DNA of 64,000 nt from Trichosphaerium sp. ATCC 40318 (Eukaryota; Protista; Tubulinea). The DNA lies in NCBI GenBank assembly GCA_038496445.1, contig JALMLS010000216.1, forward strand, positions 372,001-436,000, in the 5' to 3' direction. The translations under genes were made by a program, and so were the position numbers. This document shows positions 1,812-64,000 of this stretch, piece after piece. Within the stretch, counting starts at the first letter, position 1. Every line of letters begins with the position of its first letter. The notes beneath the pieces are model-generated. The model was not told the origin of the DNA. It searched no databases and saw nothing but the letters and a program-made list of their open reading frames with translations.

Positions 1812-3554
1812 ATGTTCAAAGGATGGTTTGCGCCAAAAAAAGCGCCATGGGATGCGCGAAAGTGGTAATTTGATAATTTTTTAACGTTTGTAACGAATTG
1901 TAGTAAAATGGTCACTAAACTAGCGCTCAACAGAGTGAAACTCCAAAAAAACAAACGGGAGAATTTAATCAAGGTTGCTAAGCGCGAAGTAGCAGAATTA
2001 CTATCAAAAGGCCAAGAAGAGAACGCACTAGTACGTGTTGAGAGTATACTAAGGTAATTTCATTATTTGAAATAACACTAAACTCCAACAAGGGATAAAG
2101 CCACAAATGAAGCATATGGAGAACTGGAATTACACCTAGAACACTTACTGGCCCGTGTGGATTCCATTGGCTTGACATCGTACGTCATTTGATTGAAACG
2201 TCAACGTCAGCTGTCATCCTAACTACCTAAACTAGTCAGCCACCTCCAGACTTACTAACACCTATATCAACCATCCTATACGCTGCACCACGTATTACTG
2301 TCAAGGAACTCCACCAAATCAGCCAAATGATGATAGCAAGGTAAGACCAAAAAAAGAATTTTTTTTTTATTATCTTGTTCTAAATGCGATTTCTGATCTC
2401 TACACTTATTAGATACGGCCAAGAATTCGCGAACGAAGCCCTCTCAAATACTTACGAATACGTTAACGAAAATGTATTACAGTACTTGTCAGTAAGCCGT
2501 CCTGAGCCTCATCTTATCAATACTTTGATTCGAGAAATTTGCACGCAATACAACGTTGATTGGAAAGTGGAGATAATAGACTCTTACGGTTCTTCATCAC
2601 GTATTGCCGAAGATACTGAAATGCCTATGGCGAAGCCTACAGGGTCTTCTAAGGGCTTAGGACCTCCTCCGAGCGTAAATCCTACATTTGATTATATGTC
2701 TGGTCCTGCACCTACTCATAACTTTTCAAAGTCCTCTACTCCTTCCCACACAATTCCAGATGTACCAATACCAAACTTTGGTACGTAGTAGCATTGATAG
2801 CATTGTTCACATCAGTTGAAATTAAAATTTTATCGCATGGTTCTAAAGTAACTCAACAAACAACTCCTTTGTAGCAATAATTTTTTTTCTTATTTTTTTC
2901 TTTATAGGCAACGCACAACCTTCACCTGAAGCAACGCCATCAATGAATACACAGTTCCCAAATATACCAAATAATGCGTTTGAAGGATTCCCAGACGTAC
3001 CAAGTAATCCTGTAGCTAGAAATCCAACCTTTCCTTCAACGCCCGGTTATCAACAAAACCCAACTCCTCATTTCCAAAACAATAATCACCAACAACAACA
3101 AAGTCATACACCTCAATTTCAACAACGACAACAGCAAATTCGTCAACAGCCACCACCTGTACAAAATGTTGGCAACAACACTTTCCCACATGTTCCAGAT
3201 GTTTCACCTTCTTTCCCAAGTGTTCCTTCTTCAAACGAACCATCATTCCCAACACCTCCGACAGTAGGTTTTCCAAGTGCACCTGTACAAACAGTTGTAC
3301 CACAACCGAATACAACTCAAAACAATGATTCAGGTGATTTAGAATTCCCAGCGGTTCCCAAGGATATGGACTTGGATTTCCCTGAAATACCAGGAACAAC
3401 ACCTCCTAAAGGACCAAGTGGTGGCGGTGAGTTTGACTTTCCTCCAGTACCATCAAGTCCAACAAAGAATATGGGTACTAGCAATATGAATGATTTCCCT
3501 GATGACCTTGACTCTCTTGAGGCTCGATTTAACAAACTCCGCAATCAAAAGTAA
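1812..3554 (+). CDS. IST1: IST1-like ESCRT-III-associated protein
   Basis: Spliced N-terminus KLALNRVKLQKNKREN...KREVAELLSKGQEENALVRVESILR...ISTILYAAPR; Pro-rich linker; C-terminal MIM-like DDLDSLEARFNKLR. Confidence 0.85.
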
Positions 3555-52225: not shown

Positions 52226-53077
52226 ATGCTTGCACATTCTAATAATATTGATTACAGGGTAATCCGTTTGATTACAAGATACAATACCTTAAAATAACAA
52301 ATTTATTAGAGAGCGGCTGTAAAAGCGGAAGAGTGCTATATATTAGACCTTCCAGTTGAGATTCAGCTTGATATTATTGATTTGGACTCATCAGTGTATT
52401 TCAAATGGCCAATCTTGTCAAAACAGGCGGCAATAAACACAAGGTATGATTGTGAGATGAATAAGCATGGAAAATGGCTTTGTAGAAGAAAGAACACTGT
52501 CATAACGCAAACGTGCTGGGAACATGGTATACAAGATGGAGAGTACAAGGGATGGTGGTCTTTTGACCTATTGAAGCACCGGAATGGCACATTGCAAAGG
52601 CATTGTAATTATATCAATGGCAAACGAGAAGGAGAATACAAGGAGTGGTTCAAGAATGGGCAATTGTGGAGCCATAGTAATTACATCAATGACAAACGAC
52701 AAGGAGAATACAAGAAGTGGACCCGTGCTGGCCAATTGCGTATACAGTGTAGTTACATCAATGACAAACGAGAAGGAGAATACAAGGAGTGGTATCGGAA
52801 TGGCACATTGGAAAGGCATTGTAATTATATCAATGGCAAACGAGAAGGAGAATACAAGGAGTGGTTCAAGAATGGGCAATTGTGGAGCCATTGTAATTAC
52901 ATCAATGACAAACAACAAGGAGAATACAAGAAGTGGACCCGTGCTGGCCAATTGCGTATACAGTGTAGTTACATCAATGACAAACGACAAGGAGAATACA
53001 AGGAGTGGTATCAGAATGGCACATTGAGAAGGCATTGTAATTATATCAATGGCAACGAGAAGGAGAATGCCAATTGA
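52226..53077 (+). CDS. F-box-like + MORN-variant (YwqK-like) repeat protein with a frameshifted 3' end
   Basis: MLAHSNNIDYR, an intron, then RAAV...ILDLPVEIQLDII; 24-aa repeats NGxLxxHCNYINGKREGEYKEW. Confidence 0.7.
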
Positions 53078-55139: not shown

Positions 55140-56921
55140 CGGAAAATCTAGGTTCTACTGACCCACTATGACACTACAAGAGTACTTACTCTGAACTTAA
55201 AGACCCAGCCATGTTTCAGTAAGTTCGATAGTAGTTTAAGATGTCACGTGCTTTTTTTTCTTTAGAACACTTGTAAAATCGTGGCTGTATCCTTGATAGT
55301 TGATACATACAAAGAGCACCTAAGATTAAAGCCAAGCTCAACCCTCGGCATCGCTGCTCTCATGTTCATATTTGTGTAACCTATCTTCGCATGCTTAGTA
55401 TACGTTAACATAAACCCGTAGTGAGCAGCTGGTGTTTAGGTTCTACTTGTGATTAAGAAACAAGAGTGGAGCTCGTAGCTTGCGCATATGGAGCACTGAG
55501 CCAATAAGTACTGGAATGAGATTGCTGCATAAGTAATTGCCTTGTGACGTGCTATGTATTCAGGATTGGCGTTCGATGTTCAACTTGTTTCGGGAACTCT
55601 TAATGTATCACCTACATCCACTATACCTTTCAACTAGAATTCAAATACACGTTCAATACTTACTACTGCATGCTATTGCACTATCAATTCTATTCTGATT
55701 GATTGGTGAAGAGCTGTAAGAGCATTGTAAACAGAACCTCTTTCTTTGCTATCTTGTAAATACTGCAAGTATTATGTTCTCTTTAATAAACATCTATTAT
55801 CCAAAACCTGGTTACACGTATAGATAAACGGTATGAATGTTTATTTATAGTACTACGATCGTGAGGGTTGTATACCTTGAAGTGCAATAATGTAGTTTAC
55901 ACCAAGGGAAGGTTGATGGTTTGAAAACTGTTGTCCTTGTCCTGCGGATGCTGTGGTTCCAGTGACATCAACGGTAGCTTCAATAGTTGTTGTCGCACTT
56001 AAAGTACCTTGAAAAGACAAGTTATGACAAGATACCAAAGGATAGGGAGAAAAAACTATCATACGAACCTTTGTCAACTGTCAATCCTGATGTATCTACT
56101 CCAAGAGACAGGTTCACATTACCTGATGTACTGCCTATCACCCTATCCTCCTCCACTTTGATAGGACAACGCGCATTCAAAGATTGACAAGTGTCTACAA
56201 CTCGCACAAGATTAAATAGAGTGCCAGTAGAGCAAGGTGGTCCTTCTCCTGGAAGTCCTCTTGAAAGTGTTACGTCAGCTGTAACGTCCAAATTCAAGTC
56301 TACATTTGGATCACCAGTGATTGAAGCGCTTCCTGATATTGTGGGTTGACCTTCAATTGTTGTTGTAGCAGTGGTGAAGTCAACTGTTTGATCCATGGAT
56401 GATACTGAGTGTGAATGAGAAGGCATATTTACCTCAGCTAGAGTTGTACTAGCAGCTCCAAACTTTTCTCCCAATCGGATGCTTGGTAAATCTTGTATTC
56501 TCTTAGAAATCACATGTAGCGTCAAGTTGTACCTGGTGCTTTTTCAGCTGCGTGTACGGGTACTCTTCCACGAAGATCTGGGAGCCTAATGTGTGTAAAT
56601 ATCCTTTTATTTGCGCAAGTCTATCAAGTATAGTAACATTTTAAGAAGGCGGTACAAAAGGCAAGTAGTGTCAAAACAATGCCTTGCACAGGCTTCACCA
56701 TAACGTTGTTACTTTGCCAAAATTCGAGGCTTCAAGTGCTCAAAACGCTGCGACAATTGTGGGGTGATCAAATGCTGATTTTGGTAAGTTAACTCACGCA
56801 AAAGTGGTTCTACCATCGCCTCCATATGTAGGTCCAATCAGGCTGAACAAAGCCTCGTAATTTTGAGTTGCTACAATGGGAAAGTAGTAGCAACGTCTCA
56901 ACTTTAAATAACTTACCCAAT

Positions 56922-58018
56922 GAGGGATAACCCGCAAAAATTTTTGGCTGGCTATCTCTATGTGGATAAGTCGCACATTTTTTTGTTCACTTATCTCTAT
57001 CATAAAATGCTTTCTTACTACTCAGCTCGTGACCACGTGCACAAAAAACTTTCCCAAACAACGTTTTGGGCAATGCAGGCATATGTTGAAAAGCATGAGC
57101 CTATTTTGTGGGCTCTTGAGAGATCACATGGTTTTTTAGCCAAAATGTTGGTCTTTACACTTTACCTTGATCTGGTTGGTATTGGCATGTCTCACTTACA
57201 CCAAAAAACAAAAAATTGGATCAAAATAGGCAACAATTCTGTACAACACAACGTGTACAAAATTAGAGAAGTTCTTTATGCCTGGGCAAATACAGTGCTT
57301 GTGGTGGGTACAGCCAGCAACTGGACAGCAGCAGCAAGGAACGTTAAGAAACCAGAACTACTTAAAGCTGTTAATTTATGGATGGATTCTTCAGACTTTA
57401 GGCTAACAGGCAAACACACCACATCTAGAAAGAGTGACCTATGGTCATACAAACTGAATGCTCCTGGAAGACGATACATGGCCATAATGGATGGAAAAGG
57501 CCATTTTCGAAAGATCTATGGTGGGTACTCTCCAAAGGTGTATGACAGCACATTCCTTGAGGTAATGCGAGAGCCCTTTACTAGGACCTTTGAAGGTGCA
57601 ACAATCATTGCTGACAACCACTTCAGAAAGGCACAGCAATACTTTAAAACTTTAACAATACATGCTAATTTAAAAGAACCACGGAATAGCACCAAGACAA
57701 AAACTGGGAGAAGTATCAAAGTACTCACTAAGGAACAGTGCAAGTACAATGCAGCTATCAAAACTCTCCGTGCACGAGTGGAGTGCCCATTTGGCCAGAT
57801 AAAGAATAAATTCAAAAAATTATCAAAAGCGTGGTTTGGGCCAGCCATCCAAATGGACTACCTTGTCTTTCTTGCAGCAGCTGTACACAACCTCACACGT
57901 TAAATAAAAGTTGGTTTTAGTCCAAAAGAGTTTTTTGTTGAGTCATGTGACAGGTACAAATAAAGTGGTAAAAAAAGCATAGAGATAGCCAGCCGAAAAA
58001 TTATGCGGGTTATCCCTC
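56922..58018 (+). mobile_element. 1097-bp DDE DNA transposon (IS5 / PIF-Harbinger-related) with 41-bp TIRs and an AAT target-site duplication
   Basis: TIRs GAGGGATAACCCGC...GGCTGGCTATCTCTATG (38/41 match); AAT at 56919-56921 and 58019-58021. Confidence 0.92.
57007..57903 (+). CDS. DDE_Tnp_4-like transposase, intronless and intact
   Basis: LWMDSSDF (D), WSYK, IIADNHF (D), YN...RARVECPFGQIKNKF (E). Confidence 0.88.
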   Translation: MLSYYSARDHVHKKLSQTTFWAMQAYVEKHEPILWALERSHGFLAKMLVFTLYLDLVGIGMSHLHQKTKNWIKIGNNSVQHNVYKIREVLYAWANTVLVVGTASNWTAAARNVKKPELLKAVNLWMDSSDFRLTGKHTTSRKSDLWSYKLNAPGRRYMAIMDGKGHFRKIYGGYSPKVYDSTFLEVMREPFTRTFEGATIIADNHFRKAQQYFKTLTIHANLKEPRNSTKTKTGRSIKVLTKEQCKYNAAIKTLRARVECPFGQIKNKFKKLSKAWFGPAIQMDYLVFLAAAVHNLTR

Positions 58019-58684
58019 AATAGCTGACCATTACAAAACGCCCAACCTCTGGGCGCAAAATTGCCAGCAAACATTCTTATCTCTCCAATGAAAGGTTCAG
58101 ACGCTTGTGATACAATTAAACAGCTCAGCAAGACAGACATAATCTATTCGTTTTATCAGCTTTTGTACACGTGATAATTAGTTTAACTATCCAGTACCAA
58201 GAATTGAGGTGCCATGCTCTTGAGTTTAGTTGGATTTGAATAGATAGCTATCCAGTTTTGTTCAGTTAATATAGTAACGTGAGATATTCGCTAATTAGGT
58301 ATCTCTCGAAAATAAAAGTACAAAAGTTGACAAAAGTTAATGCTCTCTTGCTGCTGGAAGATTACGCGTAGTTAATGGGTGCTTGAAACAATGTTAATAG
58401 GCGATTTTGCAATCAAATAGTGTGGGTTTTTTTAGTATACATGTGTAGAGGTAAATTATTTACAAGCTTTGTTCAAAGATATCAAGAAAAAATGGCAAAA
58501 CGAAAAGTTTTTTTTCACAAATTATCTACTGCTCTCCACCCTTATCAGGCACATCCGAAACAACCATGCTAAAAAATATATATTAATACTTGTTCAAAAA
58601 TAAAAATCTATCAAACCACGTGTCAGATTTCAAGGTTCTCCAAAAAAGTTGAGAGAAAAAAAAAAGAAAAAAGAAAAAACCAAC

Positions 58685-61671: not shown

Positions 61672-64000
61672 ATGGCGTATTCACACCAACAGCTCTTTGA
61701 AGGCCAGAACTTCTTCCTTTCAGAAGAATTGACTCTTGTTGAGCTGAACAGGATCAGAAAAGCTTTACATGACCATGGTGGTAACGTTGTGGACGTAGAG
61801 AGCGATAATGCAATAATTGTCATTCCTCGATTTTCTGAAGGGGTAAATATTATTTAACCTCTCACACGCATTAAAACAACGATGAACCAACGTACATAAC
61901 GTTTATATTAATTTTTGTTAGCACCATTTCGCCAGGCTTTATGAAACGGCTAAAAACGAGCAAGCCGACAATGGAGGGATTCTCTTCTTACCAACAATAG
62001 GTACAGAACCGTTTTATTATTTTTTTTCCGTTAAACAAGAGAATCCCAGCAACATTCATTTTTTTTGGAAGATTTATTTACACTTCTTCCAATAGAATCC
62101 GACCTCATTTTTGCGTACATAAAAGAAAACAGGCCTCTTAATCCTACTTTATTACCTCTATCTTCACATTGTCTCGAGGGATTCATAATTACATCAACAA
62201 ACCTCTCAAGTGACACGGTTCGGTTTTTTGTTTTAAATGTTACAAAAACAAAAAAAGATGATTTTTTTTTCTAGGAGCGTCTTTCTCTCATTTCGAAATT
62301 TTTGGGTGCAACGTATACACCAGATCTAATAGCTGGTACTACATGCCTTTTGACGACAGATCCAGTACAGCTCACTGATAAAATACGCGTAAGTTTAAAC
62401 AGGTTTTATTTCCATCAAAATCTGATCGATTAGTCATTTCTCGAGCTGACTGTCCTGTAGGAAGCCATTAAAACTGGTGTTCAAATAATTAAGTATACAT
62501 GGCTTACTACTTGTTGGGAGCATAGAAAGCGATTACGCTTAGCTAGTAAATATATATTGTGCACTCTTTTTAGAAATATGCGTATTTGTCCAAGTGGTCA
62601 AAAAGGTACTACTAACCTCTTCGAGTTAGAGTTATATTTGTGGTATACAATCACCACCTTATATTTGATTTAGACAGACATGCATTAGAAGAGTTGGTTG
62701 TCATAAATGGAGGAGAGTTTCACGCTGCTCTAACGAAAAAAACAGTCACACATTTAATAGTTGCGGTTAGTTTTTATCAAAGTACATTTTTGTCCTGCTT
62801 ACTATCTTTCCTTAGCCAGAATCAAAGGACTTTAGGACACATGCCAAATCAAAATACGCACATGCTAAATCGTGGAATATACCCGTCGCGCGAACAGAAT
62901 GGCTCTACGAGTGTGTTAAGCAAAAGAGTACGCGAAGCTATTTCACAAAAAACTGTTAACCACAATTTAGGGATTGTGGATATACAAGACTATTTGTATA
63001 CAGCTCCTGAAAATGGTGTTGAAACTAGTCAAACATCTACAGAGCGTAGTCTTATTATTGATGAGAACACGTACGTTCAGTTAATTGTTGAAAAACGAAA
63101 AAAATACCACTTTCTATCATTTTCTTCAATTTACATTTCCACGAACTCTTTTGCACCTCAATGCTTCTTCTCACTTCGAGTCTTGAATGTTGTGCTTTAG
63201 AGTAAGACTAATATTTGAAGCGTATTTATTTCAGTTTAAATTATTGTAGCTCATAATTTGCTCAAGCTAATTGTTGCTCTAGATCTGATTCAGTTCAAAT
63301 TAGAGGACAAAATAACTCACGATTACTTTCGTTTTTTGATAGTTGTCGGTTTTATCTTTGCGATTACAACGATAATGAACGTTACAGATACTCTAATAAT
63401 ATTGTTCATGGCGGTGGTCGTTGCGAGGATCGATTGACTAATGCTGTAACGCACATTATTGTACAAAACACAATTTCAAGGTGAGTGATGTTAGGATTTT
63501 TTTTGAAAATTATTTACACCCAATCAAGGAAAGATGCACAAACAATTAAGCATCTTGCAGTTCGACCTTACATTATAGATCATGCTTGGCTAATAAAAAG
63601 TCTCTCACAGTCAAAGAGGGTAGCTGAAAAAGGCTATGAGTTGAATGGTATGTTTTATTTTTAAGGAATTAACTTAATTTCTATGATTAGAATCATTGCT
63701 CGGTTTGGTGGAACCTGACAACAATCACATACAGAAATCAAATGTCCAACCAAACGCAAATCAAGGATTATCACATAATGTTCCAATCAGGAGCACAATG
63801 TTTGAAGAATTTGTATTTTTAATTAAGGATTTTCAGCCACGTGATGTACAACATTTATTATTTCATAAATGTCACTAATTATGTTTAGCTTGATAGACTT
63901 CAACGCGAATTAAGAGCTCAATCCGGAAAAGTGTACTTGGCAAATGATAATTATGAGCCTTCACAAATAAGTTACACAATTTGTCCTCATGGCACAGGTA
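61672..64000 (+). CDS. Multi-BRCT protein, TopBP1/Rad4-like; runs off the window end
   Basis: Successive BRCT units: LGATYTPDL...KYTWLTTCW; NGGEFHAALTKKTVTHLIV...KYAHAKSWNIPVARTEWLYEC; GGGRCEDRLTNAVTHIIV...HAWLIKS. Confidence 0.75.

Follow-up and report, generated by a model that had tools for sequence, protein, structure and literature searches.

Introduction

Tail-collar domains (Pfam Collar, PF07484) occur, together with a histidine-bearing HxH stretch, in phage fibre tips such as those of T4 gp12, T4 gp37 and the long tail fibre of structure 8KEC. These fibres are virion parts of 280 to more than 1,000 residues that have long shafts at their N-termini and lack a signal peptide, and their genes sit among tail and baseplate genes. 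We describe here a gene of the protist Trichosphaerium sp. ATCC 40318 that has the collar domain and the HxH stretch in common with them but carries the tip module only, at a locus that is eukaryotic, with introns and with MORN and BRCT neighbours. It lies on the minus strand at positions 55853-58215 of a 64,000-nucleotide stretch of contig JALMLS010000216.1 (positions 372,001 to 436,000 of the forward strand, assembly GCA_038496445.1); this whole stretch is called the window below, and coordinates refer to it.

In T4 gp37, the collar is composed of residues 811-860 and of the C-terminal residues 1016-1026, with the receptor-binding part between them (PMC12724248). It is the out-and-back topology that an earlier, sequence-only reading of the window had invoked for the protist gene.

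Bacteria possess tail-collar proteins of ~172 residues, often annotated as MdpB or microcystin-dependent protein-like. Their parts come in the same order as in the protist protein: (M)SEPF(I/V)GEI..FAGNFAPRGWAFC, LPDLRGR, MPSHxH and a terminal ..NYIIALxGxYPSR. The bacterial genes have no introns and usually no leader, whereas those of the protist contain five introns, encode a signal-like leader and are longer by ~90 residues in the middle.

Collar-domain proteins are also found in virophages and giant-virus hosts (OLV18/19 and OLPV, PMC3671162; DSLV2, PMC12724248). The collar-domain tail proteins of the tripartite DSLV2 set are reported to form trimers and to bind lipopolysaccharide (LPS) (PMC12724248). 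Like the protist protein, those of DSLV2 and OLV18/19 are small and eukaryote-associated, and consist of a collar, a variable region and a C-terminal return (PMC12724248, PMC3671162). They differ in being virion proteins, encoded by three consecutive intron-less genes with a heterotrimer reported. The middle region of the protist protein has no sequence relative in IMG/VR contigs.

Finally, a screen of secretory proteins of Plasmodiophora brassicae lists the 191-residue protein Pb4_109755 (CEO97090.1), annotated with a Phage Tail Collar Domain, among the candidate effectors (PMC9530463). Compared by its description, it has the same Pfam domain in another supergroup, with no hint of the insert with a Cys loop that we describe below. 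A secreted eukaryotic collar protein is thus not unprecedented at the level of annotation; our searches of the literature on tail-collar, MdpB and PF07484 proteins turned up no account of such an amoeba family.

The account that we consider probable is that one old transfer of a bacterial gene founded a family of secreted, trimeric fibre tips in this protist, and that the copy in the window is a null allele made recently by a transposon. The identity and the history of the family are well supported by comparison of sequences; its secretion, trimer state, metal and ligand we infer by analogy with known fibre proteins.

A tail-collar gene in six exons

Rebuilt from the sequence, the gene has six exons and five introns (54, 46, 212, 41 and 61 nt); each intron is of the GT..AG type and the frame is open in all exons. 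On this model, the layout given by the sequence-only reading is accurate in its coordinates, five introns, inserted transposon, leader, collar, HSH motif, Cys loop and closing motif. All searches were performed exon by exon, not with the joined spliced protein.

Translation would start at the ATG of a mini-exon (58198-58215), whose six codons, MAPQFL, are read from the sequence and have equivalents in the five paralogs presented below. It is followed by intron 0 (58144-58197; 54 nt, GT..AG). Among public sequencing data, only one run, X1, contains part of the stretch (6% of words shared), and no DNA run does. In one X1 contig, which extends to 58284, position 58198 is followed directly by 58143 without a mismatch, so that intron 0 is gone; the upstream exon is spliced to the leader, as the sequence-only reading expected. 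Since they are spliced, the X1 contigs behave like RNA.

Up to the insertion point, exon 1 (58019-58143) encodes the hydrophobic core of the leader, a probable cleavage site (at the slash in ..VSQA/SEP..) and the first half of the collar. Its final two bases (56917-56918) lie behind the duplicated ATT that borders the transposon, with the exon end and phase 1 as in the paralogs. Intron 1 (56871-56916; 46 nt, phase 1, GTAAGT..TAG), whose position and phase are common to all paralogs, separates them from exon 2 (56798-56870), which holds the second part of the collar. Exon 1 matches positions 1-23 of the Pfam Collar profile (E 5e-10, 39.6 bits) and exon 2 positions 26-47 (E 4e-8, 33.5 bits), so that together they cover positions 1-47 of 57. 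Both scores exceed the curated cut-off of 24 bits; the domain is therefore real, and interrupted by intron 1.

Intron 2 (56586-56797; 212 nt, phase 2, GTGAGT..TAG), at a position conserved in the paralogs, precedes exon 3 (56533-56585), which begins LPDLRGRVPVH... Intron 3 (56492-56532; 41 nt, phase 1) is the sole GT..AG choice that keeps the frame, and its position is conserved as well. Exon 4 (56069-56491), delineated by the alignment of six paralogs, comprises the HSH motif, a Thr/Ser/Val-rich segment, a three-Cys loop and a second Thr/Ser/Val-rich segment. The HSH motif (56417-56409) lies within NMPSHSHS, placing an (M/L)PxHxH motif ~25 residues beyond the collar. The three cysteines (56234-56232, 56189-56187 and 56168-56166) are arranged as PPC..NLVRVVDTCQ..CP amid the Thr/Ser/Val-rich stretch, and the loop as a whole spans 56240-56163.

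Intron 4 (56008-56068; 61 nt, phase 1), conserved in position among the paralogs, is spliced out in a second X1 contig, in which exons 4 and 5 are fused across the predicted intron. Exon 5 (55853-56007) encodes a Thr-rich segment, the closing motif NHQPSLGVNYIIALQG (55921-55874) and a TAG stop (55855-55853). The C-terminus of the protein, NHQPSLGVNYIIALQGIQPSRS followed by the stop, corresponds to the closing strand of the family, ..QP...N(Y/F)IIAL.G..PSR, and is similar to that of bacterial proteins. At its other end the protein begins straight with the leader and the collar; a phage-type N-terminal attachment or shaft region is absent.

The best bacterial open reading frames (ORFs) are 93% identical to exon 1, up to 94% identical to exon 2 and 83-91% identical to exon 3, in the last case over 11-12 residues. 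Identity drops to ~45% in exon 4, where it is limited to the first ~35 residues, and amounts to 55-64% over the final ~30 residues of exon 5.

A family of six genes under purifying selection

A six-frame search of the 70.3-Mb assembly retrieved five further loci with the same parts, all of them intact-looking. Identity in exon 4 is 86% for two paralogs on contig 21, and 28-38% for two on contig 6 and one on contig 75. Every one of the five has the mini-exon (4-6 codons, then a phase-0 intron), a hydrophobic leader, the collar, the HxH motif and the NYII.L.G.FPSR end; the positions and phases of the five introns, with their GT..AG borders, are identical across the six loci. The transposon is found in none of the five paralogs. 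The sequence-only reading depended on intact homologues and on an upstream exon spliced to give the leader, and it stands on both counts, given the five intact-looking paralogs and the spliced mini-exon.

The leaders of all six genes measure 18-20 residues, with a hydrophobic core of 12-14 residues and small residues at -1/-3, and end before (S/T)EPF. One of the contig-21 paralogs has no internal ATG, so that its start must come from the mini-exon; this gives independent support for the upstream mini-exon. The signal peptide claimed by the sequence-only reading is matched, by eye, by a signal-like leader in all six paralogs, but it is no eukaryotic novelty: some Bacteroidota-type homologues have one too.

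Several residues are invariant in the family: the histidines H25 and H27 of HxH, the G and Q of the collar motif GQLL, and the three cysteines, which stand in PPC, CQ and CP. Between the window copy and its two nearest paralogs, the ratio of non-synonymous to synonymous substitution rates (dN/dS) is 0.15-0.17, at dS ~0.55-0.62. Such low values suggest that purifying selection acted on the window copy during most of its past and that its break is recent.

The sequence-only reading had predicted a variable tip, and here the paralogs speak against it. In the four divergent lineages, the columns of the Cys loop have a mean pairwise identity of 50%, against 22-27% in the flanking segments: no other part of exon 4 is as well conserved as the loop. 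If the loop forms the distal end, it would be a conserved head on variable shafts.

The two contig-21 paralogs, L002 (~237.4-238.4 kb) and L003 (~272.9-274.0 kb), are mosaic with respect to each other: they differ at 9 of 420 bases in exon 4 and at ~25 of 117 in exon 1, a pattern that suggests gene conversion across the middle of the gene. On contig 127, positions 131365-131436 give a weak, sub-threshold Collar match of 16.8 bits.

A rebuilt middle and a possible fibre

Judged from its exons, the family is a bacterial-type collar gene with a rebuilt middle. For about 110 exon-4 residues, the Cys loop among them, no collection searched yielded a relative. The open frame of exon 4 gave no match in a word-indexed protein search; its profile, made from the six paralogs, found none among the PDB sequences; a search of the ESM Atlas by features returned nothing, and neither did a scan of metagenome contigs and IMG/VR with the exon-4 alignment. 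Against 1.84 billion representative proteins the profile had two weak matches only, both rejected. The first, to a 571-residue metagenomic protein (P0001), aligned only in the HxH part; the second, to a carbonic anhydrase, is a chance match on TTPPC..NLLKV. Against a profile of the bacterial proteins, exon 4 aligns in its first 31 columns alone, that is in the HxH part (hhalign probability 92%).

P0001 itself, encoded on a 2.2-kb metagenome contig from the Joint Genome Institute, is made of three tandem modules, each with collar, HxH and closing strand, with acidic RRLEED-like linkers between them, which gives it the look of a polyprotein built from tail-collar units.

Compared with solved structures, a bacterial member of the family matches the long tail fibre 8KEC best (8.7e-8), over a region that includes PSHxH (LPSHQH), and T4 gp12 in 1OCY, 1PDI and 5IV5 at about 7e-6; the matches range from 8.7e-8 to 6e-5. 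In gp12 and gp37, the HxH histidines hold zinc or iron ions on the axis of the trimer.

What such a fibre would bind is a separate matter. The lectin or opsonin function proposed by the sequence-only reading is a candidate role. Among relatives whose role is known, T4 gp12 and gp37, as well as the virophage proteins described in PMC12724248, have LPS or outer-membrane proteins of bacteria as ligands. A working fibre, secreted or at the surface, could also have no bacterial target and belong to the cell coat or cyst wall as a structural or adhesive component, or bind surfaces of the protist itself or of viruses. The putative tip is conserved, which agrees better with a single, constant ligand than with a variable repertoire of prey, and the Thr/Ser-rich shafts carry N-x-S/T sites, as is typical of glycosylated coat proteins. 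Faced with the bacterial ligands of the known fibres, we regard a non-bacterial role as a rather unlikely explanation.

A young transposon interrupts the window copy

The element inside exon 1 (56922-58018, plus strand, antisense to the gene) is a DNA transposon of 1,097 bp, recognised by its inverted repeats, target duplication and transposase ORF. Its terminal inverted repeats of 41-42 nt occupy 56922-56962 and 57978-58018, and are flanked by a 3-bp target duplication, AAT/ATT, at 56919-56921 and 58019-58021. Nearly the whole element is filled by an ORF on the plus strand (56920-57903; 984 bp, 327 residues), which matches DDE_Tnp_1 (3.7e-10), DDE_Tnp_4 (2.8e-8) and, weakly, IS5.

From these matches and ends, the element is a transposon of the IS5/Harbinger type. 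With the IS5 and PIF-Harbinger (ISL2EU-like) group it has in common the DDE_Tnp_1, DDE_Tnp_4 and IS5 matches, the terminal inverted repeats and the 3-bp duplication. Unlike PIF-Harbinger elements, it is only 1.1 kb long, with a single ORF and without the second, Myb/SANT-like gene typical of eukaryotic Harbingers; its target is AAT at each end seen, versus the usual TWA.

Elsewhere in the genome there are one full-length copy of the transposon and four partial matches, at 98-99% identity, which points to a young family. AAT adjoins every transposon end seen in the genome, suggesting a fixed target. The start of the transposon ORF lies in the terminal repeat: its ATG (56920-56922) consists of the AT of the AAT duplication and of the element's first base, G. 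With AAT abutting all ends, each insertion would rebuild the start codon of this ORF.

The insertion point is 4 bp short of the end of exon 1, within the collar. Removing the transposon and one copy of the duplication restores ...GQLL and the splice site G/GTAAGT, that is an exon end as in the paralogs; the transposon-free site would read ..CAGCTATTGGGTAAGT.. As assembled, the window copy cannot make the protein, and the sequence makes it most likely a recent null allele or a very young pseudogene.

To some extent at least, the window copy is still transcribed. At both ends of the gene, the window locus or a near-identical allele is transcribed and spliced, as seen in the two X1 contigs that remove introns 0 and 4. 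The second of these departs from the assembly by a 1-nt deletion, CG to T at 55994-55995, and by six other letters, three of which are tabulated (55951, 56112 and 56148). The deletion would shift the frame of the C-terminal collar strand, and the contig may come from a variant allele or strain whose C-terminus is frameshifted; it hints at decay. A further joint, 57559/57625 inside the transposon, was dismissed: the short contig that contains it also contains adapter sequence.

The locus could nonetheless be functional, were the transposon present on one haplotype or strain only and expression confined to an allele free of it, or were the element removed from the transcript through a cryptic donor in exon 1. 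No exon has lost its open frame and no splice site is damaged, the transposon family is young, and the gene yields spliced transcripts from both ends; moreover, an in-phase GT at 58028-58027 lies upstream of the insertion. Such a cryptic splice, however, would remove the highly conserved GQLL of the collar, no contig uses this donor or joins 58019 to 56918, and the frameshifted exon-5 transcript points to decay. On balance we think it unlikely that the locus still works, and hold to a recent loss by transposon insertion.

A probable bacterial origin of the family

For the 28 residues that follow the leader, two collections were scanned: bacterial genomes, one for each species, and the viral contigs of IMG/VR. 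More than 600 bacterial loci from many phyla matched, with identities up to 93-96%; IMG/VR contained 23 loci, the best at 86%. Based on this difference, the source looks bacterial, namely the chromosomal ~172-residue genes, rather than phage or viral. These genes begin MSEPF.. and frequently stand two or three in tandem. The descent from phages or bacteria put forward by the sequence-only reading appears to hold in its bacterial half, the viral match being 86% at best; its broader claim of a eukaryotic gene of such descent is borne out by the Collar matches, the introns and the bacterial identities. Taken together, the comparisons indicate that these eukaryotic genes, with their introns, descend from the bacterial/phage tail-collar family.

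Most bacterial homologues, which are ~172 residues long, have no signal peptide. We observed homologues of Bacteroidota type, 202-206 residues long, with a Sec-type leader of their own, which ends ..AQ/SDPF or ..SQ/EPF: one in a Flavobacteriaceae genome (L125:312-923), the others on an IMG/VR contig (L038:1148-1753 and 2398-3015). The latter is the top viral contig of the scan, and it resembles a bacterial three-gene cluster.

The surroundings of the gene are of eukaryotic type. Two neighbouring open frames on the plus strand, at 52382-53077 with MORN repeats (1.9e-28) and at 62640-63200 with a BRCT-type domain (2e-5), are probably exons of ordinary eukaryotic genes. The GC content is uniform, at ~37%, and no viral protein family was matched among the nearby ORFs tested.

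A giant-virus or virophage fibre gene, for instance from an integrated viral element, is another conceivable source. Amoeba-like protists are hosts of giant viruses, and collar-domain proteins occur in virophages and giant-virus hosts. Yet over the same 28 residues the best viral identity is 86%, versus 93-96% for bacterial chromosomes, and even the top viral contig carries what looks like a bacterial cluster. Nor do the nearby ORFs that were tested match viral families, and the six copies are dispersed, with shared introns, among ordinary eukaryote-type ORFs; a viral source appears very improbable to us. Contamination of the assembly with bacterial or phage DNA, as the near-identity of the collar residues to bacterial sequences might suggest, has practically no chance of being true, excluded as it is by the five GT..AG introns kept in six copies, by the spliced contigs and by a transposon that other contigs of the genome also carry, in addition to eukaryote-type flanks and uniform GC.

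Discussion

We now propose a history for the family and a working model of its product. A single old transfer would have brought in a bacterial gene of the ~172-residue 'phage tail collar' (MdpB-like) type. Afterwards, this gene, with a secretion signal at its N-terminus that was either newly acquired or already there, would have taken up five spliceosomal introns and ~90 extra residues in its middle, including the conserved three-Cys loop. By analogy with T4 gp12, gp37 and the virophage tail proteins, the product is expected to enter the secretory pathway and to trimerise. The base of the fibre would be the collar, assembled from the N-terminal domain and the C-terminal NYIIALQG strand; the HxH histidines would bind a metal ion on the three-fold axis; and the Thr/Ser/Val-rich segments would form a thin beta fibre, out and back. 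The Cys loop at its far end would be the binding surface, for which a glycan, of bacteria or of some other surface, is the most plausible target. Lastly, a young transposon would have hit the collar of the window copy, which until then was under purifying selection.

Several points limit this account. On the side of expression, all transcript support comes from one run with fragmentary contigs; none of the X1 contigs lies over 56246-57337, and neither a read nor a contig crosses either transposon junction of the locus. The signal-like character of the leaders was judged by eye. Ranking the bacterial loci by C-terminal similarity singled out no donor phylum. As for the fibre, three copies of exon 4 predicted together obtained a score of 0.02, which speaks neither for nor against a trimer. 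The AlphaFold monomer of exon 4 is of low confidence, with a mean predicted local distance difference test (pLDDT) of 35, as is that of a bacterial homologue modelled with 25 sequences (mean pLDDT 53).

Going further, the six genes could represent a new class of recognition proteins in protists, with a phage-type trimeric tip and a disulfide-stabilised, lineage-specific three-Cys head, directed at prey, symbionts or viruses; this is a speculative extension, which we consider doubtful. The family falls into two clades of three genes, which may form mixed trimers, as is reported of the virophage triplets and as the tandem genes of bacteria might also do. If they do, losing the window copy would alter the repertoire; taken by itself, this copy contributes only a dated example of gene loss through a young transposon.

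Taken as a whole, the family is a clear instance of a bacterial fibre-tip module that turned into ordinary eukaryotic genes: it has introns and a leader, has been duplicated, and is new in its middle. A receptor-binding architecture of phages may in this way have been reused by a bacterivorous protist. Should the proteins bind glycans of bacterial surfaces, they would provide a compact natural scaffold for glycan recognition, as well as an insight into how amoebae distinguish microbes.

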